Source of the DNA: Macrostomum lignano
Taxonomy: Eukaryota
Length of the DNA: 64,000 nucleotides
Assembly (NCBI GenBank): GCA_002269645.1
Contig: NIVC01003194.1
Location: 1 to 64,000, forward strand
Direction of reading: 5' to 3'
In this document: positions 20,875-36,929 of the stretch, one piece after another
Layout: every line of letters begins with the position of its first letter
Position numbering within the stretch: the stretch's first letter is position 1
Translations under genes and position numbers: made by a program
Notes under the pieces: model-generated
What the model saw: only the letters and a program-made list of their open reading frames with translations
Told to the model about the DNA's origin: nothing
Databases searched by the model: none

Positions 20875-22741
20875 ATGGCAAGCGATACAATACTCCTGTT
20901 TGAAACAGCGACTAGCAAAAGAGGTTACTATGGAAGCAATTCGACTCAAGCTGGAACTCGTACAGGTAATTCGAATGAAGCTGGAGGTGCAGAAGTTAAT
21001 TCGAATGAAGCTGGAGGTGCAGAAGTTAATTCGACTGAAATTGAAATTCATCCAGCATTTTCCATGAAGTTCTGCAACTTGCTGCCAATCGAATACACTG
21101 TGATCTTGTCGATTTTGAGTTTAGCTTTAACCTTAAATGACAGCCAACTGCAGAGAGGTAACGAGAAGTGCGCTGACTTCAAGCCTTTGCCGTCGAAAAT
21201 TTGTAGTTCAACCTTATTGTTTTGTGCTGTGTTCTCGCTCATTGGGTTGCTTTTGTATGCTTATTGTAGCAAAAAGAAGCTTGTCAATGCCAAAGTGTCA
21301 GATAAAGATGGCAAAAAACGGTCGTTTAAAAAAGTCTCAGCCTGGATTCCTGTGCTGGAAAAGCACGCTTCCGTGCCTTCTACATTCCTGCTGATCGCCT
21401 GCTTTTTGCTAGGCCTGGTCTTCGCTATTGGAAACGCCTTAAAATCTATTGACGGTATTTTCCAGCTCACAAGCGATGAAAACGATAGTAACCACTGCTC
21501 GGATCCAAATTTCTGGTGGCACTTTGACAAGTTTGTGATTCCATGCCTAAAAGTCGCGTTTACAATACTCCAAACCCTATTCTTTGCATTTCATGGCAAC
21601 CAAAGTCCGAATACGAGCCGTGGTTTCTCAATTTTATTCTCCTTTCTAATGGCCCATTTAATCGCCACCAACTTGTCGTCTTGGTTCTCAAGAGTTAACT
21701 CTGAAGTTCTGGAACAGCTCAATAATCATAATCATTCAGAAAGCAACAATTCTGGTATAAGCAAATTTCTGCCCTATATTTTTCCATTCAGCGCTGAATA
21801 TTCCCCTCTCTGCGCCATTTTCGCCCTGTTCTGGTGGATCAACATCGGGCATTTGGCTAAACTGTTGCGCGAGCATCCTGCTGTGAAAAATGAAGAAGAT
21901 CTGCAGAATTTGCTGAAAGAAAGCTCGCACGATCTGGCTCTTTGTCGGACCTTCTTGAAACTTCTTGGCCTGATCCTACTGACAGCTTTTACCATATTTT
22001 CCTCCATATTTTTTTTTCTTGAATCTTAACCGAATGTATCAATATACGATATTCTACTTCGTTATGATGTGCCTCCACTTTGTCAATGCAATCGCTTTGA
22101 TTTGTTTCTTTCGGTTTGGCCGTCAAAATCAGAACTCCACTGGTCAGCAGTTTCACAGACGCTACGGAGTCGACGTTGCTCTGTTGTGGATAGCTGCAGT
22201 ATTTGACACAGCTAACAATACATTTTTACTTGCATACAACTTTTACAACATTATCGATCCCTCGCGAGTTCAGTTCGATGGTAAAGCCGCCAAAAACTCC
22301 GTTCCATTTGCTGTGGCTTTCGTAGACCTGATAATTGGTATAGTGGACACCTGGTTGCAAGTAAAAGTATTGACTCTGGCGTTCAACTGGACATTCCGCG
22401 CCAATTCAACAACGATCGATAGGTTAAAACAGTGCTCTTGCGTAATAATGGCGATAAACTTAATAGAGTGGTTGATGTTCACTATTCGCAGCTCCCAAAT
22501 GATTGTCGACACAGAATCTCTCAAGATTGGGATCCCATCGATAACGCTAATTGTGTCAATCATTTGCTTGCCGCTCTCGATATTTTACAGATTCCACAGT
22601 GTCGGCTGCTTAGAAGAGATCAGAGGACACCTGGAAAAAGTAGAATTGACGCCAGATAATACGATCTACATCGAAATGGTTCCACTGCGGCCTGCTGAGA
22701 CCAGGCCTGCTGAGACACCGCCTGCTGAGACCGCCTGCTGA
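20875..22741 (+). CDS. otop: Otopetrin-family proton channel, copy 2 (intronless; one apparent +1 frameshift in a T9 run at about 22009-22017)
   Basis: MAHLIATNL, FPFSAEYS and IFYRFHSVGCLEEI. Removing one T fuses ORFs 20875-22029 and 22019-22741 into a ~620-aa protein colinear with copy 1. Confidence 0.85.
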
Positions 22742-23595: not shown

Positions 23596-24657
23596 ATGGC
23601 GAGAGTGCTGCAGAACGTCGACCTGAAAGACCTGGCCAACCGGTTGCTCACATTTGACACTGAGGATGTTGAGAATCACGTGCCGCTCACTGCGGCTGAG
23701 TGCCTGTCAGTGTGCCACATGGCCATGGAGGCAATGAGATCCACAGACATCTGCATCCACATCAAGACGCCAATCAACATTGTGGGCGACTTGCACGGCC
23801 AGTTCCACGATCTGCTTCGAATATTCGACGCTCTTGGCCAGCCGCCCGAGTCACGCTTTCTGTTCCTCGGCGACTACATCGACCGAGGCAAGTACTCGCT
23901 CGAGGTGATGACGCTGCTGTTTGTGCTGATGCTGCTGTACCCGAACTCGGTGTACCTGCTGCGAGGCAACCACGAGACGGCCAACATCTGCTGCAGGTAC
24001 GGATTCAAAGACGAAATCGGCCAACGAATGGTGCGAATTCAGGCGCACAAAGTGCTTGGCGGATTCGTCAGGACCTTCCAGTGGATGCCGATGTGCGCAA
24101 TCATTGATGGCCAGATCTTCTGCTGTCACGGTGGCATCTCGCCAAACTTCATGCTGCAACCATTTAACCTTCGAGGCGGGCAGCAGGCCAATGTCCAGGC
24201 GTTGAACGAGTGCAAGAAGCCGGTGGAACCGGTCAGGCCCGGCATCCTGTGCGACATCATGTGGTCGGACCCAATTGGCACCGCGTTCAGCGCCCAGTTC
24301 AGCCAGAGCAGCGAGACTCTGACTGAGGCCAAGTGGCTGCCAAACAAGCGTGGCTGTTCGTTCTCATTCTCTGGCCAAGCTCTAGAAGAGGTGATGCGGC
24401 TGTTCCAGACTCAGATGCTGATCAGAGGCCATCAGGTGGCTATGAACGGCTATCAGTCACAGTTGAACAGACGCTGCGTCACCGTGTTCAGCGCGCCTGG
24501 CTACTGCGGCGTCTACAACAATATCAGCAGCATACTGCAGATCGAGCGGCTGAACGATGATAGCAAATCCCCTGGCAGTTTTTTCCTGCTGCGACCGATG
24601 CAAAGAGACCCGTCTGCGCTGGCAAACCTGTTCTGGAACGAGCTGCGCGACATCTAA
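23596..24657 (+). CDS. PP1-like Ser/Thr protein phosphatase catalytic subunit (PPP family), intronless, 353 aa
   Basis: GDLHGQ, GDYIDRG, LRGNHE, HGG, RG, RGHQ and SAPGYC motifs all present. Confidence 0.95.
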   Translation: MARVLQNVDLKDLANRLLTFDTEDVENHVPLTAAECLSVCHMAMEAMRSTDICIHIKTPINIVGDLHGQFHDLLRIFDALGQPPESRFLFLGDYIDRGKYSLEVMTLLFVLMLLYPNSVYLLRGNHETANICCRYGFKDEIGQRMVRIQAHKVLGGFVRTFQWMPMCAIIDGQIFCCHGGISPNFMLQPFNLRGGQQANVQALNECKKPVEPVRPGILCDIMWSDPIGTAFSAQFSQSSETLTEAKWLPNKRGCSFSFSGQALEEVMRLFQTQMLIRGHQVAMNGYQSQLNRRCVTVFSAPGYCGVYNNISSILQIERLNDDSKSPGSFFLLRPMQRDPSALANLFWNELRDI

Positions 24658-25009
24658 GAGCGACGACTCCATTTGACACGGTGAAGGAAAGTTCGGCAGC
24701 TCACCTCTGCACAGACGATAGAAAGTTATTTATTTTTTTACTAACGAAAGTTCATTTGTTTGTACTCACTTGGTGAAATAAAACTGCCTTTTTCCTAAAA
24801 ATAATAAACTGCAGAATAGACTGTCGGCATTTTTTTTGCATCGCTGGGAGTTAAATGGTCTTGAAGGCGTTTGACACGAGGCTGTAGGTTGTAAAATACC
24901 GAAATATGCGAATAATATACCGTGTGATTTACATTGTAAGACGCCAACGGTTAGAACACGTTGCTTTTAATCTGCCCTTCTTGTGATGACACTTCCAGCT
25001 GATACAGGT

Positions 25010-27492
25010 GGGTGTTTGATGGTGTCATTCCTGATGCAGGTGTGGGTGGGTGTTTGATGGTGCCATTCCTGATGCAGGTGTGGGTGTTTGGTGCCATTCC
25101 TGATGCAGGTGTGGGTGTTTGATGGTGCCATTCCTGATGCAGGTGGGTGGGTGTTTGATGGTGCCATTCCTGATGCAGGTGGGTGGGTGTTTGATGGGGC
25201 CATTCCTGATGCAGGTGGGTGGGTGTTTGATGGTGCCATTCCTGATGCAGGTGTGGGTGTTTGATGGTGCCATTCCTGATGCAGGTGGGTGGGTGTTTGA
25301 TGGGGCCATTCCTGATGCAGGTGGGTGGGTGTTTGATGGTGCCATTCCTGATGCAGGTGTGGGTGTTTGATGGGGCCATTCCTGATGCAGGTGTGGGTGT
25401 TTGATGGTGCCATTCCTGATGCAGGTGGGTGGGTGTTTGATGGGGCCATTCCTGATGCAGGTGTGGGTGTTTGATGGTGCCATTCCTGATGCAGGTGGGT
25501 GGGTGTTTGATGGGGCCATTCCTGATGCAGGTGGGTGGGTGTTTGATGGGGCCATTCCTGATGCAGGTGGGTGGGTGTTTGATGGGGCCATTCCTGATGC
25601 AGGTGGGTGGGTGTTTGATGGTGCCATTCCTGATGCAGGTGGGTGGGTGTTTGATGGTGCCATTCCTGATGCAGGTGTGGGTGTTTGATGGGGCCATTCC
25701 TGATGCAGGTGGGTGGGTGTTTGATGGGCCCATTCCTGATGCAGGTGGGTGGGTGTTTGATGGTGCCATTCCTGATGCAGGTGGGTGGGTGTTTGATGGG
25801 CCATTCCTGATGCAGGTGGGTGGGTGTTTGATGGTGCCATTCCTGATGCAGGTGTGGGTGTTTGATGGTGCCATTCCTGATGCAGGTGGGTGGGTGTTTG
25901 ATGGTGCCATTCCTGATGCAGGTGGGTGGGTGTTTGATGGTGCCATTCCTGATGCAGGTGTGGGTGTTTGATGGTGCCATTCCTGATGCAGGTGTGGGTG
26001 TTTGATGGTGCCATTCCTGATGCAGGTGGGTGGGTGTTTGATGGGGCCATTCCTGATGCAGGTGGGTGGGTGTTTGATGGTGCCATTCCTGATGCAGGTG
26101 TGGGTGTTTGATGGGGCCATTCCTGATGCAGGTGTGGGTGTTTGATGGTGCCATTCCTGATGCAGGTGGGTGGGTGTTTGATGGGGCCATTCCTGATGCA
26201 GGTGGGTGGGTGTTTGATGGTGCCATTCCTGATGCAGGTGTGGGTGTTTGATGGTGCCATTCCTGATGCAGGTGGGTGGGTGTTTGATGGGGCCATTCCT
26301 GATGCAGGTGGGTGGGTGTTTGATGGTGCCATTCCTGATGCAGGTGTGGGTGTTTGATGGGGCCATTCCTGATGCAGGTGTGGGTGTTTGATGGTGCCAT
26401 TCCTGATGCAGGTGGGTGGGTGTTTGATGGGGCCATTCCTGATGCAGGTGTGGGTGTTTGATGGTGCCATTCCTGATGCAGGTGGGTGGGTGTTTGATGG
26501 GGCCATTCCTGATGCAGGTGGGTGGGTGTTTGATGGGGCCATTCCTGATGCAGGTGGGTGGGTGTTTGATGGGGCCATTCCTGATGCAGGTGGGTGGGTG
26601 TTTGATGGTGCCATTCCTGATGCAGGTGGGTGGGTGTTTGATGGTGCCATTCCTGATGCAGGTGTGGGTGTTTGATGGGGCCATTCCTGATGCAGGTGGG
26701 TGGGTGTTTGATGGGCCCATTCCTGATGCAGGTGGGTGGGTGTTTGATGGTGCCATTCCTGATGCAGGTGGGTGGGTGTTTGATGGGGCCATTCCTGATG
26801 CAGGTGGGTGGGTGTTTGATGGTGCCATTCCTGATGCAGGTGTGGGTGTTTGATGGTGCCATTCCTGATGCAGGTGGGTGGGTGTTTGATGGTGCCATTC
26901 CTGATGCAGGTGGGTGGGTGTTTGATGGTGCCATTCCTGATGCAGGTGTGGGTGTTTGATGGTGCCATTCCTGATGCAGGTGTGGGTGTTTGATGGTGCC
27001 ATTCCTGATGCAGGTGGGTGGGTGTTTGATGGGGCCATTCCTGATGCAGGTGGGTGGGTGTTTGATGGTGCCATTCCTGATGCAGGTGTGGGTGTTTGAT
27101 GGGGCCATTCCTGATGCAGGTGTGGGTGTTTGATGGTGCCATTCCTGATGCAGGTGGGTGGGTGTTTGATGGGGCCATTCCTGATGCAGGTGGGTGGGTG
27201 TTTGATGGTGCCATTCCTGATGCAGGTGTGGGTGTTTGATGGTGCCATTCCTGATGCAGGTGGGTGGGTGTTTGATGGGGCCATTCCTGATGCAGGTGGG
27301 TGGGTGTTTGATGGGGCCATTCCTGATGCAGGTGGGTGGGTGTCTGATGGGGCCATTCCTGATGCAGGTGGGTGGGTGTTTGATGGGGCCATTCCTGATG
27401 CAGGTGTGGGTGTTTGATGGGGCCATTCCTGATGCAGGTGGGTGGGTGTTTGATGGGGCCATTCCTGATGCAGGTGTGGGTGTTTGATGGGG
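25010..27492. repeat. G-rich satellite with 36-bp and 34-bp monomers (about 70 units) and a ~987-bp higher-order duplication
   Basis: gatgg(t/g)gccattcctgatgcaggt(gggt|gt)gggtgttt; the rare variant gggccc occurs at 25726 and 26713. Confidence 0.97.
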
Positions 27493-28010
27493 GGATTCTT
27501 TCAGAAAGGAACGAATGGACAATTCAGGTGTCAGGTTGTCCACCGAGCTCCAAAATATCAGCGCATATCTGCCCGACCCCGAGAAAAGTAATCCCGCACA
27601 CCTAGGCATTTACCCAAATTTTTAGTGACATGAGTTTCTAATTAAATAATTATACCACGACTCGGCGTCTGGAGCCTTCATCATAAATTTTACTACTTTG
27701 TAAAAAATAAACGCTTGCAGGAAGAGACTAATTGCAATTCGGGAATTTTTTTAGAAAAGATAAAAATTATTTTCGAAGTATATTTGATAAAATGCAATTA
27801 GACAGTTCAAATATGTGACGCGATAGACAATACTGTTCCATAAAAAGGCGTGAAGACAGTAATTCACTGGCAGTACACTGATAAAGCAGACCAGTTGTTC
27901 CGAAGATGCACAGCCTGGAGAATGAAAGGTAAGAAGAAACGGTAATAATTTGACATACATAACATACATTAAATTTCCAGTAATATAAACAGGTGTTTAA
28001 AATTTTATAA

Positions 28011-28134
28011 TCAGATGTCAAAATGCTCTTCACAGAAAATAAATTGGCACAAAACACAAAAATAGAATTAAAAATGTGTCAACTGCCAATTTTTTATTTG
28101 TTAATCAGGTGAAGAAATTCAAGTATAGCATCAT
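28011..28134 (-). ncRNA. SNORD36: Box C/D snoRNA, U36/snR47-like, double guide, with long internal hairpin
   Basis: C box ATGATGC; guide TTGAATTTCTTCAC + D' CTGA is a 14-nt complement of conserved LSU rRNA GUGAAGAAAUUCAA (D+5 = yeast Am2220 / human Am3724 as recalled); C' GTGAAGA; second guide CATTTTGACAT + D CTGA. Confidence 0.8.
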
Positions 28135-28320
28135 ATTGTGGTGAATTGTAAGATAAAAAAAAAATAATAATTTCAATTTCTTACCTACTAGTTTGTAGGA
28201 TTGATGCAGCACAAGTTTTAATGCGAATCTCCATCTGCAACGAAAATTTTAATAAACTAAACTGTTTAAATAAATTAACTAAAATAAATGAATTTTTTTA
28301 TTTTTTAGAAACAAATATTT

Positions 28321-28389
28321 TCAGCGATCTTGGTGATAAACAGTCTTCATTGACCTGACGGACTTCAAGACAGTTAATATTTTCATCAT
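28321..28389 (-). ncRNA. SNORD24: Box C/D snoRNA U24 homolog, copy 1
   Basis: ATGATGA ... ATGAAGA ... ATCACCAAGATCG-CTGA; the 3' end matches vertebrate U24 (..CACCAAGAUCGCUGA) and pairs with LSU rRNA GAUCUUGGUGGU (D+5 = yeast Cm1437 site). Confidence 0.88.
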
Positions 28390-28590
28390 AAATAATACTG
28401 GAATTACTACTCAAAAATAAGTATAACAGAGTGAATTTTAATGACACTAAAATCATTGATCTAACACTTACCAAATCAACATATCTCCAGGCCATGTCTG
28501 TTCTAAAAAAACAGAAATTTTGTTAAAGTTACACAAGTATTTCAGAACTATTTAAAGAAACAAATTCATCAATGCAATTATATATTTTCA

Positions 28591-28652
28591 TCAGCGATCT
28601 TGGTGATAACAAGTCTTCATAGCGACTCAAGCAATTATTAATTTTTCATCAG
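28591..28652 (-). ncRNA. SNORD24: Box C/D snoRNA U24 homolog, copy 2
   Basis: CTGATGA ... ATGAAGA ... ATCACCAAGATCG-CTGA. Confidence 0.83.
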
Positions 28653-28826
28653 TTCAAAATCTTATTGAGCTACTTAGAGTAGAAGTAGATGTGAATTAAC
28701 TTACAGGAGAATTCATAAAACTTGACTCGACCAGATGACCTGACAAAAAATGAAAGGAAAACACAAATAAAGTATGCATTTTCAACTCTAAAGTAATAAT
28801 TACACTGGCTAGCACAATTGTGAGTC

Positions 28827-28889
28827 TCAGCGATCTTGGTGATTAAAACGTCTTCAATTTGCATGCAGACAATTAGTTTTGTTCATCAT
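28827..28889 (-). ncRNA. SNORD24: Box C/D snoRNA U24 homolog, copy 3
   Basis: ATGATGA ... TTGAAGA ... ATCACCAAGATCG-CTGA. Confidence 0.85.
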
Positions 28890-31059
28890 ATTGACCAAAC
28901 TGTGTCTTCTAACCACTAAAAATGTTAATCTAACAGCTTTAGATGGGTTTAGCCAGTAGAAATATAATGATTTATTAGTAAATCTAATTAAAAATACACA
29001 CAAAATCTAGATAGCACACAATAACTTATCTAGATATAATTATGCAATCTATGTAAACCCATATAGAAATATGAGCATAACATTTCACTATCGTATAGGT
29101 AGGTACACATTTTCAATTTTACTTACCAGTCTATCAAGCTATAACTCAATCAGAACTCAGACTCAGAGCAATGATGTTATGACTGCAAGTGAAATACTTG
29201 CATGCATACCCAACTGTTAGTTTCAATAGCAGAAGCCTTTACTTGGCACAAAAGGAAATTACAGAAAAGAATAAATAAACAGATGTTAATAAATAAGAGA
29301 CACTTTTCATAACCAATATCTGTGTACCAAATAATAATGATTGTATAGATCATATTTGAACCCCTTAAAAAAGAAAATTCCTTAAATTCAAATTAAATAA
29401 AAATCTACTTCTATTAAATACTCGTATTTATCTATGAACAATGTTCTTACATACTTGACAAAGTATCCATATTTCAAGATTTGTTTAAATATTAGCTTAC
29501 ATAAATGAAACAAAAAAACTTTCTAATTGCAGCTCATAAGCATATTGGGAGATGGTGTCTACTGCAGATCAGCCTGGCTAAGTATGCACAATAGTATGTG
29601 TACTATTGGGGAGTGCAAGGATATATGATAGGATGAATATAAGATGCATGCAAGGAAAGGGTTCAGGGCTTATGCAAGAGTATATAATGTATATGCCCTA
29701 GGGGGTAAGGTTAAAGTGTCTGGCTTGAAAAAGGGGATAATTGGCATATTTTAGACCTTCACTATAGTAGTTTGTAGCAAAGCCTCTTAATGTAGCATTT
29801 AACATCCCTTAGGTTAGGCCTTATTACTTACTTTATCAACTTGGCTTGCTACTGCTTTGCTATATCATGTTGAATGCTATTAAGCTTACTTTAAATAATC
29901 TTCCTTTAGTTAGCCTTTTCTAAGTATTGCTCAAAAGCTTCGTATTGCTATTTGGCTCAAGTTATTTCAATTGCCTTAGCTTAAGCTTCAAAGCCATTGG
30001 CTAATAACTCAGGGCCCTATTTGGATTAGATAATGGCACAACCAAAGCCAAGGAGGGGACAGAAAGTGGGGCAGTTGTCCTCCCCCTCATACATGCGCAA
30101 CAATCGGCCGAGTTGGCCGATCTGGCCAACCGATTTGGCGGCCAACCAAGGAAGTTGCAAAAATGCCCACCCGAAAAAATACCAAAGTATTAGTACTAAG
30201 TAGCTGACAAGGCATTTTGACTTAATAAGACAGTCATAGTTACTCTTGCCATTTACCCAAAGTTGCGTTAATTTTCCGTTAGAGTTTTTTTATATGTAAG
30301 TTGCATTTTTGGCCAAAAACTACGTTGCATTTTTGTTAAAACTAAGTCGCAAGGCTGACCGAATTTTGGAGGTTGCGCATGTATGCTCCCCCCCAGGCAA
30401 AGACCAGAAAAAATCAAAGGGGGGACCAAGCAAATTTTTGCCAAAAACGAAGCCATTCTTCTGCCTCCCTCTTTTGGGTCTTTACTTTCCAGAATCTGCC
30501 CCTCAACAAATTTCTAGTTGTTCTACTAGGATTAGGTATACAGTAGCCAGATTAGACTTTAGCCATATCTTAATAGCCAACAAAAAATTAATAGTAAACT
30601 TAGCTTTGTTCAATGTGCATATGCATACCACTGTAGGTCATTGTAAAATCACTTTAAAAAACTGTTTATACTATCTATACTACCATAGAAAATGTAGCAT
30701 ACATTATGTCCTAGTTTAGATGGCAGATGAGTCTATAGAAGTAGGCCTAGAACTATTAGCAGTGGCAGATCTAGAGTTTCATTCAGGGGGAGGGGGCAGT
30801 CAAAGTTTTAGGATGCCAACATGAGTATAAAGAGCACTAATTTATAAGCTAGGAGGTGCAAAAAATCATGTGTGAGGCAAAAATCAAGCTTAAAGATGCA
30901 AAAAATGCATGCAAAGGGCAAAAAATCAAGCTTAGAGGCACAAAAATGCATTTAAAAAGCAAAAACTCAAGCTTAAAGGTGCCAAAAGGCATTTGGGATG
31001 TAGGAAGATAACCTTGGCTTGAGTATTTAAACAATGCCACACTTAGAGACACGGAGCAC

Positions 31060-31308
31060 CAAGTTTCATCAACATGGTGGCCATGTCTTTAATAGTGACT
31101 AGGTTTATACTTATAGACATGGTTGCTATGTCTATAATGCAGAAACTTATAGACATGGTGGCCGTGTCTCTAATAGTGACTAGTTCTATACTTATAGACA
31201 GACACAGAGCCATGTCTCTAAGTTTCTGCATTATAGACATAGCAACCATGTCTATAAGTATAAACCTAGTCACTATTAAAGACATGGCCACCATGTTGAT
31301 GAAACTTG
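31060..31308. repeat. Near-perfect ~99-bp inverted repeat with ~50-bp spacer (foldback/MITE-like)
   Basis: Arms 31060-31158 and 31210-31308 are reverse complements with about one mismatch; built from internal agacatgg/ccatgtct subrepeats. Confidence 0.9.
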
Positions 31309-34140
31309 CACATTGGCCATGTCATTATTATTGAATAGATTCACACTTAGAAACAATGGGTGGCAATGTTGTTAATATTGTATGGGTTCACACTTAGAGA
31401 CACAGTAGATGACTATGTCTATAATTTTGCAACTTAAAGGCATAGCTGCTATGTATATAATCATTGATACAAAAATGTATGTTCTGTGGGGCTCTCTCAA
31501 AAGCAAATGATGGCTTAGTGGATAAGTTAATTGCCTTGTGATTGTATGAAAGGTTTATTTGAATTTAGTTTTAACAATAACAACAATAATCTTAAAGTGC
31601 AGCTCCACAATTATAAATAAAGCTACTGAAAAAAAATATTTTTTTATACTTATTGGCTGCCCTATAAGAAAAAGTTGTAAAACCGCGGACAGTGTCTGGC
31701 ACACTTGAAATTTTTCTAAAGCGCAGAGCGCACAGGCGCATCACCTGCGCGCGCTGCCCTTTCTTACTGGCTGCTGCTCCAGCAAATGCCAAATACATAT
31801 ACATGGAAATGGGTATAATACTTCTGTTGAAGGGGCTTATACACTTGTAGTTTATTAAGCTTAGAGATGTTCCAAAAATTCAATTTCAAGTTTCCAAAAT
31901 TTGAAATTTTTAAAGCAAATTTCAATTTTGAAAAAAAATTTAGAAGTGAAAATTTTGGTAGTCTAAAGAGTTGCTAAAAATAAACTACTTTCTACTATAC
32001 ATGCATTACTTATACTTAAGCAGTAAATTGAAAGTAAAAAGTAAGTGTTGATCATATTAAACTTTGTTTTTTGAATTATGATTTTGGGAAATTTTTTTAA
32101 TTTTGATTTTGGAAAGTTAGCAAATTTTGATTTCGACGAAACTGCAGATCTTTTGGAACATCTCTAATAATCTTGATGTGCGGAAAAATAGTTTGACTTT
32201 TTTCTAAAGCCCGTGTCTGCAGGTTTTTAACATTTATTCCAATAGGGATTGGCTGCATTTTGTAATTAGTTAAACATTAATAGTCTCATTAAATATGTGA
32301 TCTAGCAATAACTTAAGTGAAGAACATAAACAAAAATATGGCAAACTTCTTATAATATAAAATTTGTAATAATCTATAACTTATAAGTTTGAATACTTAC
32401 AGATATAGCTATATATATAATTGTAGTTGCACTTAGCCTTAAGATTTAGTGTTAGTCTTATTAAAAATTTAATTTAAATTATTATTTTATTTTAATTTAA
32501 AAACTTCAAAATGTTTAGGACACAAAAAAGTTTTATTCACTAAAAAATTTAAATTTGAAAAAAGACTGCCTACTTGGGATTTGAGCCTTGCTATAGTATA
32601 TGCCATTACAAGGCAGGTGACAGGCCTATTCACAAAGCCACCATTTGCTTGTAAGACAGCCTTATAGGCCTAGAATATACATTCTGTATCAATTTTTTTT
32701 AAATATAGGCCTAAGCCATGCCTATAAGCTCAAATATTATAGACACATCTGTTGTGCCTATAAGCTCCAATATTATAGTCATAAACACAGCTGCCATGCC
32801 TATAATTACTCCATTTAAACAACTGCAAATTAATATAAAAACTAAAACAAGCACTTTAATTGCACTTTTAAAGATTACATATCTATCTACTACTGAAAGC
32901 ACCATTATTAAACTTTTTACATTAATAGTTAGAATTTGCTAGTGAAATTCTTCAAATTTAAAACTAAGGGCATGGCTACACTTACAGGAATCTATGGAAT
33001 GTGACTACAACTGCAATTACCATGTTTTCATAGTCGTAGCCATAAGAGCAGCTATCTACCATAGGCATATCCATAGTTTCCAAAAGCCTTTTTAACAATA
33101 AATTATTGTATCAATAAAGCACCATCGTACAATTAAGTTAATAAGATTTAAGGCTTAGGCCAAGCAGCCTAGCTGAAGTACCAATTCAATGCTATTGTGA
33201 GATTTCAACACCTAGTTGGGAATTGAGGCAATTTTCTAAGCCTCAGGCCGTCAGGGTTTTAATTTTCTGAACCCAGCAGCTCGCTAGTTAAAACACCTGT
33301 TAAGGAGCAAAAAGAATAGGGGTCATTGGGAATTTTGGGGGAAGTGGCTGTACCGACGCGAACCGTTTAACGGTTTCATTGGTTAGTTTTTAAGCTTTGT
33401 ATATAACATGTCGTAAGGAGTGGCTTTTAAAATCTCGCTAAAATTATGTTCAAAGCGTATTTTTACCTTTGATTAACAAAATAATTTACAATTATTGCCT
33501 AAGAATATGTTAAGTTTAAAATAATAGTATTTCTAAAGTAAACAAAAATATTACATTATGCACTTATAATAAGGATTAATTTGTCAGGTGAAAATCGTTA
33601 GGAAGAAGGACATACAGCTGGAAATCAAAGACACAGTACTAGTCCCAAAGAATTTCTAACGAAGCATTCGTTGCACACAAAACTCACTCAGTTTTAAAGA
33701 AGTGAGTCCTTTATTCGATTTTTTCCTGCCACATTATAATCTCTTGCAAAAAGAGATGAGGCCAGCTGTCAAAAACTGAAGAAGCAAATTAAATATGGTG
33801 GCGCAACGATGGTTTGCTTTCTTGGATAAGTATATCCATCCATAGACTATTTGATGAATTAATGGATAATTTTCTTAAATTATAGATAAAACTAAAACTT
33901 TAAGGTGATCGGGATTGAGAGCATACATACATGTATGTATTAAATAGATATATACATGTACGTATGTAAAGCGCGTTACATACATGTGTGTTGCAATCAC
34001 CTACAATAGTACTCGTATATATAATATAAATGTTATGTTACGCGCCCATGAACATGCAAAGTAAAATGTTACATATGTGGGGCTTTCGGGAGAAACACAT
34101 TGTGCCTTCTGATCTAGGTAATCGCGATTAGGAAATTATA

Positions 34141-35133
34141 ACAACAACAACAACAGAATACGCATTTAGCGTCACAGGGCGCGCTTCAAGGCCAGGTCGC
34201 GAATAAACGCCACGCCGCCGGCCGAATCCAGAGCGCCAGCGTCAGCCAGCAGGCAGTCGACGAAACGCTGAGTGCGCGCCTGCCCCCGCCAGTAGGGTGA
34301 CTGCGCGTTGGCCGCTGCACAGCTCCTGCACCGGCTCAGTAAGACTCGGCGCGGATGATGTGGCCTTCCAGCTGTAGCCGCCGACGGCGCAACAGCTCGC
34401 TGTGGACGGACCCGGCCGGCGTGGCGATACAAAGCCGCGTTGGCCACTCACTCGTAGCCAATCTTGAAGGCAGCGCGCAGCAGGCCAGCGTGCGCTGCGT
34501 CAACTTGTTGCTCGAGCGACTTCATCAGCGTCCAGGTCTCGGCGTTGTACAGCAGGACGGTCTCGATTACCGCCTGAAACAATGCCGCCCTCAGGCGGTC
34601 AGGTAAGACCTCGGACTGCACGTCAGGCCTCACAGAACAAAAGGCAGCCCAGGCAAGCCCGCGGCGACGCCGCAAATCCTCGCAGACGCCGGGAACCAGA
34701 CCGCCGAGGTAGACGAACTGCTGACACGCGGAAGTTTGTCGCCTATCCATCAGCGCCTCGGCACAAAATCGCAGTCTCGATGTCGTCCATCAGGCCGATG
34801 ACCACCAGGCCGACACTCGCCGCAACAGCAACTAGCTTGTCCACTTGTCGCTGGGCACCCTCGACAGTTGAGGACAGCAGGGCGATGTCGTCGGCGTAGC
34901 CAAGCACGCTGAGCCGCCTCTCCGGTTGACATCGACCCACGCGTCGCCGCAACAGAACGCCGTCGTCGTTAGTAGGAAGATCGCGGTCCGCAGCACCCAG
35001 TCAAGCACCAGAACGAACAGGAACGGCGCGAGCGTATCTCCCTGAAGCACCCCGGTAGGATGTCTCAAATAAGTCCGATGCCGTCCGGTGTTGAAACAGC
35101 AGCTTTCGTATCACGGTACATCGCCGTGATTGC
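34141..35133 (-). mobile_element. RTE-like LINE, 3' segment (RT C-terminal half and (TTG)n tail)
   Basis: AITAMYRDTKAAVSTPDG, GVLQGDTLAPFLFVLVLDWVLR and GYADDIALL; tail at 34141-34155. Confidence 0.9.
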
Positions 35134-36929
35134 GGAACTGTCGCACGCTCAAGGCCGTCTGGCAGAGAGGGGCTCTGGCAAAGCTAGCGCTCGACCAAAG
35201 CTGTGACGTCATCGCACTGCAGGAGGTGTCTATTAAGGCTGATCCGGGGCTACACTGTGAGGATCTGGGCGCCGGATGGACCCTCTACATGTACTACACA
35301 TCGGCGGACGACGAGGCCGTGAAGGAGTTGGAGCGCTGGTCGGACCGAGGCTGCAGCTGAGATGTCGCTGCGTCTCTCTGTCCCCTCGGCTGCTCCGGGT
35401 CGACGTTCGGCTTCGCGGCCGAAACGCTCGCCTGTTCTGCGCACGCGCCTCCTGCCACCCGACCTGACGAGGCTCTAGAAATCTTTGAGCAGCTCTCGTT
35501 ACAGGTGGAGGCAAAGGCGCAGCGTGACACAGTGTTAATCCTCGGAGACCTGAATGCGGTTTTGCGTAGGTCCGAACGGTCACTGTTCGTCACACCGCGT
35601 GAGAACGGCAACACCGGAGCGCTGGAGGACTTCCTAGAGCGGCAGGACATGGTGTCGGCCAATACCCGCTTCCGCAAGCCGCTGGGCAGGCTCGCAACTT
35701 TTGTGGGCTACAGGCGCAGGCGTTGGATCGCGCGTGGCGGGAACGCAACACGGAGGCAGGCACAGCTCGATCATGTGCTGGTGCGCTTCGTCAAATGCCG
35801 CGCCATCACGCCGCTGGCTCTGTGGTCTGATCATCGACTCCTCGTCTGCGACCTTCGTCTTCGAGATCCGCTCTACCGTCCGCCGAAGCGGCCACCGCGG
35901 CGCTACTACCGCCCGCTCAGGGACGCCAACACGCACAGCCGCTTTGCTAGCGCTTTCATCACTGCGCTCGGCGGCAAGCGTGGAGGTGCCGAGCGCTGCA
36001 GTTCCAGCCGCCGCGGAACAAGCAGTCCCGCTGATGCGAACGGCCCGGAGGGAGCAGTCGGTATGGCAAGACGACCCCGCGATTCGGCTAGCGAGGGAAG
36101 AGCTGTAGAGACTCCGTTTGAGCAGGCGACCAACACGAAGGCCTAAACGGCTGTCTATCTGCAGTGCCAGCAGGCTGCTGTTGATGACGCCATTCGGGCC
36201 CGATTCCATAGGTCGCGTGGCCTGTTCGGCTATCAATGCTCTGATGGGGCGAAAGCGGCGCATATCGCTAAACCTGGCGGGCGACTCTGCAGGCGAGCGC
36301 AGGAACGAGCTGCGCGACTTCCTCGCAGCCATTGTCAACGCGCCGCCACCCCCACTGCCAGACAGTCTGACGCTGCCGCCGGAGATGCCGTTGCCGGCAG
36401 AGGAGAGCTTCAGCTAGGTCTAGCACAAGTCGGCACAGCCGACGTTGTGAGGCTCGCCCAACAGGCAACAGTCGGGATGATGTGCCCATCGAGGCGCTGC
36501 GCCAGTGGCCAGTGAGGTTGCCAGAGTGATGCATCGCGTGCTATTCGGTGAGGAGGCAACCAACGAATGGACCACGGCGCACATCTTTGAAGTCCTAAGA
36601 AGCCGGGCACCACGAGGCTTGAGGAGCATCGAGGTATCTGCATTCAGTCCTGCGCTGCGAAGTTGTTCAACCGGATGCTGCTATCGCGGTTGCAGCCCGT
36701 GCTGGATCCGTACCTGCGCCATGAACAGAACGGCTTCGGCCCCATCGCGGCACAGTGACGCAGATCCTAGCTAGCTGGCTCTTCGGCGAGTCATCGAGAA
36801 AGCATGGATACGCCAGTCGATCCTTATTGTTATCTTCATAGATTTCAAGAAGGCTTCGACTCGGTCGGTCGTCAGGTCTGTGCTCCCAAAGGTGATCCGC
36901 GCGTACAACGTGCCCGAGCAGCTGCTGAA
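35130..36929 (+). mobile_element. Inverted 5' segment of the same LINE (APE endonuclease and RT N-terminal half)
   Basis: NCRTL, DVIALQEV, LILGDLNA, QLDHVL and SDHRLL (APE); then RLQPVLDPYLRHEQNGF, FIDFKKAFDSV and RAYNVPEQLLK. Confidence 0.88.

Follow-up and report, generated by a model that had tools for sequence, protein, structure and literature searches.

The minus strand of a 64,000-nucleotide (nt) stretch of the Macrostomum lignano genome (assembly GCA_002269645.1, contig NIVC01003194.1, positions 1 to 64,000; the whole stretch is referred to below as the window) carries at 29182-27767 a locus that, judged from its sequence, is likely to be a dedicated non-protein-coding host gene for small nucleolar RNAs (snoRNAs), of the type represented by UHG and GAS5. 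This interpretation is based on the anatomy of the locus, on matches to known snoRNA families, on the complementarity between guides and ribosomal RNA (rRNA) targets and on the retention of these features in a second genomic copy, present on contig NIVC01001474.1 with 97.7% identity over 3.5 kb.

Reading of the minus strand and extraction of the exons gave four GT..AG introns separated by micro-exons and preceded by exon 1 (Table 1). The exons of 56, 35, 31 and 50 nt with canonical splice sites that a preliminary description of this DNA had proposed were all recovered. Three donors are GTAAGT and one is GTAAGA, and the acceptors consist of a pyrimidine-rich stretch followed by AG. Each intron contains one box C/D RNA, and the four RNAs lie on one strand at a spacing of 240-300 nt. 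Their D boxes end at 28827, 28591, 28321 and 28011, leaving 87, 88, 86 and 96 nt to the final base of the intron, exactly as previously described. GTAAGT is found 23 times in 128 kb (both strands of the window) and three of these occurrences are donors of the host gene; the composite signal formed by a pyrimidine tract with AG, 20-80 nt and GTAAG is found ten times in the same 128 kb, two of them being exons 2 and 3. The arrangement of snoRNAs and splice signals exceeds chance. The optimum for the assembly of box C/D small nucleolar ribonucleoproteins (snoRNPs) coupled to splicing lies ~50 nt upstream of the branch point (PMC8162545). If the branch point is located 20-40 nt from the acceptor, the 3' ends of the snoRNAs would lie ~45-65 nt upstream of it, and the distance of 86-96 nt between D box and acceptor thus fits a splicing-coupled assembly near this optimum. 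No minus-strand coding gene is present close to the host gene on either side, which indicates that the snoRNA introns are not untranslated-region introns of a neighbouring protein gene.

Table 1. Predicted exons, introns and box C/D RNAs of the host locus (window coordinates)
Feature	Position	Strand	Length	Details
Exon 1	29182-29127	-	56 nt	donor CTG/GTAAGT solid; 5' edge uncertain
Intron 1	29126-28740	-	387 nt	GTAAGT...TTTTTTGTCAG; hosts U24 copy 1; both splice sites unchanged in second copy
U24 copy 1	28896-28823	-		RF00069, 42.3 bits; C box ATGATGA 28889-28883; C' TGAAGA; D box CTGA 28830-28827
Exon 2	28739-28705	-	35 nt	acceptor TTTTTTGTCAG/, donor CCT/GTAAGT; holds first ATG of the predicted spliced RNA
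Intron 2	28704-28503	-	202 nt	hosts U24 copy 2
U24 copy 2	28657-28587	-		39.5 bits, E = 3.5e-4 (7-kb search); C box CTGATGA 28652-28646; C' TGAAGA; D box CTGA 28594-28591
Exon 3	28502-28472	-	31 nt	acceptor TTTTTTTAG/, donor TTG/GTAAGT; holds ATG of the 73-amino-acid reading frame
Intron 3	28471-28235	-	237 nt	hosts U24 copy 3
U24 copy 3	28394-28316	-		40.6 bits, E = 1.9e-4 (7-kb search); C box ATGATGA 28389-28383; C' TGAAGA; D box CTGA 28324-28321
Exon 4	28234-28185	-	50 nt	acceptor TCGTTGCAG/, donor TAG/GTAAGA
Intron 4	28184-27915	-	270 nt	GTAAGA...TTCATTCTCCAG; hosts U36-like RNA
U36-like C/D RNA	28138-28007	-	~130 nt	C box ATGATGC 28134-28128; D' box CTGA 28108-28105; D box CTGA 28014-28011
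Last recognised exon	27914-27767	-	at least 148 nt, to stop codon of the 73-amino-acid reading frame	acceptor TTCATTCTCCAG/

To assign the RNAs to families, Rfam was searched at the gathering threshold with the whole window and with E-value reporting on 7 kb and on 64 kb. At the gathering threshold the sole family found was SNORD24 (RF00069), with U24 copy 1 scoring above the cut-off of 41. Three SNORD24 matches were obtained in total (42.3, 40.6 and 39.5 bits; window-wide E = 7e-4 to 3e-3); located on one strand within 600 nt, they account for all snoRNA matches found in the 64 kb at E<0.05. The preliminary description had suggested an Rfam search of the region, and it is this search that supplied the three SNORD24 matches, one of them above the gathering score; the description had not noticed that three of the RNAs are U24 paralogues, that the fourth is U36-like or that the acceptor of exon 1 is not conserved. 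The three copies have the box layout of SNORD24/U24/yeast snR24 (RF00069), its D guide ACCAAGAUCG-CUGA and a length of 71-79 nt. A terminal stem of 4 bp (GGUC/GACU) is present in copy 1 and one of 5 bp (UAUUU/AAAUA) in copy 3, and the Rfam alignment of copy 2 shows terminal pairing with one non-standard pair. The C' motif TGAAGA and the D box CTGA are common to all four RNAs of the locus; a canonical D' box is found only in the U36-like RNA. U24 unit 1 (28888-28582) and unit 2 (28651-28315) are 63% identical over 352 nt, in an alignment that spans the snoRNA, the intron tail, the exon and the head of the next intron. This identity across whole modules indicates that the first two snoRNA-intron-exon units are tandem duplicates. 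In unit 3, only the snoRNA is detectably similar (72% over 72 nt).

Guide targets were searched on a stand-in ribosomal DNA (rDNA), a metagenome contig (L029) of eukaryotic origin that was found with the complement of the U36-like 5' guide plus the expected 28S context and that contains complete large-subunit, 5.8S and small-subunit rRNA according to the Rfam models; all pairings reported here refer to it. The three U24 copies carry the D guide AUCACCAAGAUCG-CUGA, which pairs with 28S GATCTTGGTGGT(AGTAG) and stops one base before CUGA, so that position 5 faces the C of GAUC*UUGG. The duplex formed by copy 1 (28843-28832) with 28S GAUCUUGGUGGU has 12 bp, of which 11 are Watson-Crick pairs; those of copy 2 (28612-28596) and copy 3 (28339-28326) have 17 bp (13 Watson-Crick) and 14 bp, respectively. 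U24 targets C2338 and C2352 of human 28S rRNA and U36/snR47 targets human A3703 of 28S and A668 of 18S rRNA, the yeast targets of U36/snR47 being 28S A2218/2220 and 18S A619; both families have been traced to the last eukaryotic common ancestor (PMC3511933, PMC3511168, PMC2653536). The guide targets found on the stand-in 28S agree with these published U24 and U36/snR47 sites.

The RNA of intron 4 resembles SNORD36/U36/yeast snR47. Its D' guide (28123-28109) pairs with 28S GUGAAGAAAUUCAAG at 15 of 15 positions, all Watson-Crick, with CUGA directly after; the matched 28S sequence is GTGAAGAAATTCAAG, with the second A of GUGAA*G lying opposite position 5. The 5' guide GAAUUUCUUCAC-CUGA corresponds to the SNORD36 consensus and is fully complementary to the 28S A3703 site, and the guide-plus-box sequence GAAUUUCUUCACCUGA is identical to the Rfam SNORD36 consensus. 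Other properties set this RNA apart from SNORD36: it measures ~130 nt instead of ~75 nt, its C box ends in C (AUGAUGC), and an internal hairpin of ~55 nt lies between D' and C' (GTGAAGA). Its terminal stem is weak, and the energy-minimised fold pairs the box regions themselves.

A decayed 28S-like fragment is located on the same strand ~1 kb upstream of the host gene (30195-30274, minus strand). Over 82 nt it matches positions 2599-2678 of the stand-in 28S with 76% identity (E = 4e-12), and it starts within the 28S segment targeted by the U36-like snoRNA. Its sense orientation excludes a role as a guide, and it could be a piece of a pseudogene or of a repeat.

The coding potential of the exons was then considered. 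Exons 1-3 contain stops in all three frames, and the sole open reading frame (ORF) of the spliced exons encodes 73 amino acids (aa) rich in Cys and Leu (MAWRYVDL...NILRK) across three exons. The peptide previously read from the last three exons is thus present, with a length of 73 aa and not ~75 aa. It has no homologue among 5.8 billion protein clusters and no Pfam match; a conserved long protein running through these exons was looked for and not found. The proposal of a non-coding host is supported at the level of the sequence. A micro-exon gene whose mRNA encodes the 73-aa peptide and whose introns host the snoRNAs incidentally, as in ribosomal-protein genes, would account for an ATG in good context (ACATGG), a frame that crosses three exons with its stop in the last one, and its openness in both genomic copies. 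Against it, the peptide has no recognisable signal or domain in addition to the lack of homologue and Pfam match. Furthermore, the four differences between the copies that fall in the ORF (C16S, R25G, L48F, S56L) all replace an amino acid and none is silent, a pattern that points away from a selected protein, within the low power of small numbers from one close comparison. Lastly, the first ATG, in exon 2, opens an ORF of 12 codons (MNSPNRHGLEIC) that is out of frame with the 73-aa ORF and ends in exon 3, upstream of two junctions. We therefore regard a protein-coding gene as very unlikely. The spliced RNAs of snoRNA host genes have been described as substrates of nonsense-mediated decay (NMD). 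With a stop before two junctions, the spliced exon RNA would by the usual rule be such a substrate and is probably short-lived; for NMD of snoRNA host genes, PMC10557570 points to its reference 64. Near the last exon no AATAAA was found, the only related motif being an AATAAT that overlaps the stop codon of the 73-aa ORF.

Of the nine splice sites, eight persist in the second genomic copy, where the four donors and the four internal acceptors are identical. Every box is retained, and so is every guide that matches rRNA: the D guide in each U24 copy and the two guides in the U36-like RNA. U24 copies 1 and 2 are identical between the two contigs. In U24 copy 3, one base is changed in the A run after the C box, and one terminal-stem pair is lost while an adjacent one is gained, boxes and D guide being unchanged. 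The U36-like RNA shows five differences, all in the internal hairpin region and none in a box or guide. Exon 4 has two substitutions, both of which change an amino acid of the 73-aa ORF. As a test of selection, the comparison of the two copies was set aside, because a divergence of ~2% is too small to separate selected from neutral parts.

Several observations weigh against the assignment of the locus as a functional non-coding host gene. Firstly, the stand-in rDNA may differ from the rRNA of M. lignano. Secondly, two of the U24 copies score 0.4-1.5 bits under the gathering score of RF00069, and the U36-like RNA, searched within 156 nt, reaches 18.9 bits (E = 0.8) against SNORD36 (RF00049, CL00051), for which the gathering score is 30. 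The model aligns to the 5' half of the RNA alone, and it does so only when the RNA is searched by itself, the 7-kb search giving no Rfam match; the low score is explained by the insertion of the ~55-nt hairpin between D' and C'. Thirdly, the 5' (D') guides of the U24 copies have no convincing match to the second canonical site or to another site of the stand-in rRNA, and the guide for this second site (C2352) is degenerate in all three, which distinguishes them from RF00069. At the GUAGCAAAUA site (human C2352), the best pairing of copies 2 and 3 has mismatches on or beside position 5; remnants of the canonical AAUAUUUGCU 5' guide are still visible in these two copies, and the 5' guide of copy 1 bears no resemblance to it. 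Other rRNA targets considered for these guides were rejected, as the duplexes are short or rich in G-U pairs, have no adjacent box and are indistinguishable from chance. Fourthly, the D guide of the U36-like RNA pairs with 18S GUUAAAAAGCUC (A668 site) in a duplex that contains a single mismatch and a single G-U pair, and the A faces position 6 and not position 5. This is an imperfect complementarity to the 18S A668 site of the SNORD36 family, and only 7 of 6054 rDNA positions score as well as the expected site (top 0.12%). The U36-like RNA may additionally act on the A668-equivalent site of 18S. Fifthly, the 73-aa ORF is intact in both genomic copies. Finally, at ~2% divergence the conservation of boxes and guides is statistically weak and suggestive only, ~3 changes being expected there by chance.

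A further point of this kind concerns exon 1, since the AG that precedes it (29184-29183) is CG in the second copy, with two further changes just inside the exon. No upstream exon could be identified 5' of exon 1, and above 29182 neither another snoRNA nor a clear exon is present. As the acceptor is not conserved and no upstream exon is found, the 5' edge of exon 1 is uncertain: of the five junctions initially predicted, four have splice sites that are kept in the second copy, and the fifth is unsupported. Either exon 1 is the first exon with a promoter upstream, or the gene can do without the junction that precedes it. Transcription may in fact begin further upstream, for instance at the pyrimidine-rich stretch ~29270-29245, which is preceded by T/A-rich sequence and makes this region a candidate promoter. 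Possible upstream donors are GTAAG at 29500 and 29450 and GTAAAG at 29243. A fifth, decayed U36-like unit was considered at ~29356-29279 (minus strand), where the two ends of the U36-like RNA seem, by eye, to be echoed by AATATGAT-CTATAC and AACATCTGTTTAT, and where 96 nt separate a D-like box CTGT from the AG at 29183. It was not accepted, as the local alignment scores were attained in 79 of 500 and 913 of 2000 shuffles.

These observations also bear on the possibility that the locus is silent or decaying, its RNAs being pseudogene copies left by duplication while functional U24 and U36 are encoded elsewhere, for example in the RPL7A gene of M. lignano. The degenerate U24 5' guides and the acceptor of exon 1 lost in the second copy would agree with decay, and M. 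lignano is described in the literature as a recent polyploid with redundant copies. Nevertheless, the C, C' and D boxes and the terminal stems (weak in the U36-like RNA) are intact in the four RNAs of both copies, together with the U24 D guides and, in the U36-like RNA, the D' guide and its box, and the substitutions in this RNA avoid boxes and guides; we consider a decaying locus improbable to a high degree. A polycistronic or independent cluster processed by nucleases without splicing, as in plants, yeast and trypanosomes, with splice-like signals arising by coincidence, would suit four same-strand snoRNAs at 240-300 nt spacing in tandemly duplicated units whose splicing is only predicted, but it is hardly credible given that one pyrimidine-rich acceptor and one strong donor, in strict alternation, separate each snoRNA from the next, that the D boxes lie 86-96 nt from AG, that splice signals are rare elsewhere in the window, that all eight internal splice sites are retained in the second copy and that animal guide snoRNAs are overwhelmingly intronic, one per intron.

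For a non-coding host gene, the sequence suggests the following pathway, inferred throughout, from transcription, splicing and processing to methylation and to the instability of the spliced RNA. RNA polymerase II would transcribe the minus strand from just above 29182, and the spliceosome would remove the four short introns, with the assembly of a snoRNP on each of them coupled to splicing. After debranching, exonucleases would shorten each excised intron as far as the box C/D core, which Snu13/15.5K, Nop56, Nop58 and fibrillarin, the proteins of the snoRNP, protect. One U36/snR47-like snoRNA and three paralogous U24 (SNORD24) snoRNAs would result. Each of the three U24 copies would guide the 2'-O-methylation of the 28S C in GAUC*UUGGUGG (equivalent to human C2338 and yeast C1437), and the U36-like RNA would guide the methylation of the 28S A in GUGAA*GAAAUUC (equivalent to human A3703 and yeast A2220). 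The spliced exons would be a by-product and be discarded.

This organisation resembles that of UHG (SNHG1), GAS5 and Drosophila dUhg, in which the exons are likewise short, numerous and devoid of a conserved ORF, each intron holds a single C/D snoRNA at a set distance upstream of its 3' splice site, and an early stop precedes later junctions. In these genes the snoRNAs are the selected product and the spliced RNA is an expected NMD substrate. The M. lignano locus differs from them by its unusually small exons (31-56 nt) and by its content, three paralogues of one family and one other RNA, compared with many different families in UHG, GAS5 and dUhg. The pyrimidine-rich stretch ~29270-29245 and the 12-codon ORF are compatible with the 5' terminal oligopyrimidine and NMD traits of UHG-type genes, without proving them. 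The type of gene is therefore already known and this animal is newly added to it; literature searches yielded no study that deals with the snoRNAs of M. lignano or with snoRNA host genes in flatworms.

The combination of families is also that of a protein-coding host. Human RPL7A hosts U24 and U36A-C (PMC3511933), and in chicken RPL7A intron 1 carries U24 while introns 3 and 4 carry U36 (PMC2653536). Vertebrate RPL7A (SNORD24 and SNORD36A/B/C) thus has the U24/U36 set, borne by successive introns of a single gene, and the rRNA targets in common with the M. lignano locus, with inverted copy numbers: three U24 and one U36 in M. lignano compared with one U24 and three U36 in RPL7A. Linkage of U24 and U36 could be ancestral to bilaterians and have existed first in RPL7A, a Macrostomum copy of which would have lost its coding capacity, survived by its snoRNA-bearing introns, while its exons shrank to spacers of 31-56 nt whose sole remaining role is the splicing of these introns. 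We consider this origin unlikely, and the shared set may also be a coincidence; if true, this origin would show concretely how the death of a protein-coding host can give rise to a non-coding one for snoRNAs. RPL7A coding sequence was looked for in the window by tblastn with an RPL7A query and was not found in the host; the best match (E = 0.75), located elsewhere in the window, was rejected as noise.

The locus leaves the current understanding of snoRNA biology unchanged. Its interest is that an ORF-based annotation of flatworm genomes would miss such genes, that it supplies candidate guides for two conserved 28S methylations in a regeneration model organism, and that it is a compact example of snoRNA multiplication by tandem intron-exon duplication. 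The presence in a non-coding host of the U24 and U36 pairing of vertebrate RPL7A also bears on the change of snoRNA hosts in evolution.

Sequences flanking the host gene were also analyzed. After the last exon, a GC-richer stretch (27685-27555, minus strand) runs from TATGATGA to GCGCTGA, ~135 nt apart, and has after its C-like box an 11-bp match to the stand-in 28S followed by CCGA. As a C/D candidate it was rejected, as there is no Rfam match and the 11-bp 28S match is within chance expectation; the 28S region concerned, just upstream of the U24 site, is variable between species. Directly downstream of the host gene, a 36-bp minisatellite (25007-27490; ~70 copies, 95% match, G-rich on the plus strand) explains the long overlapping ORFs found in several frames on both strands. 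These ORFs have no Pfam match and could pass for a repeat-protein gene. On the other side, long near-perfect inverted repeats at 31113-31350 matched several unrelated microRNA hairpin models on both strands, well under their gathering scores; this segment looks like a palindromic repeat or one resembling a miniature inverted-repeat transposable element, and not like a microRNA. Further away, a GC-rich block (~60%; 34448-36146) contains broken ORFs on both strands, one of which weakly matches endonuclease/exonuclease/phosphatase (E = 4.7e-4); another ORF stretch, without Pfam match, we take by eye to be reverse-transcriptase-like, and the block is probably a fragment of a retrotransposon without long terminal repeats. 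On the plus strand, an otopetrin-like membrane protein gene (20875-22741; PF03189, E = 2e-14), apparently split over two adjacent ORFs, adjoins an intronless gene for a PP1-type Ser/Thr phosphatase (23596-24657; Metallophos, E = 3.5e-30), the protein of which is 100% identical on NIVC01003194.1 and NIVC01001474.1.

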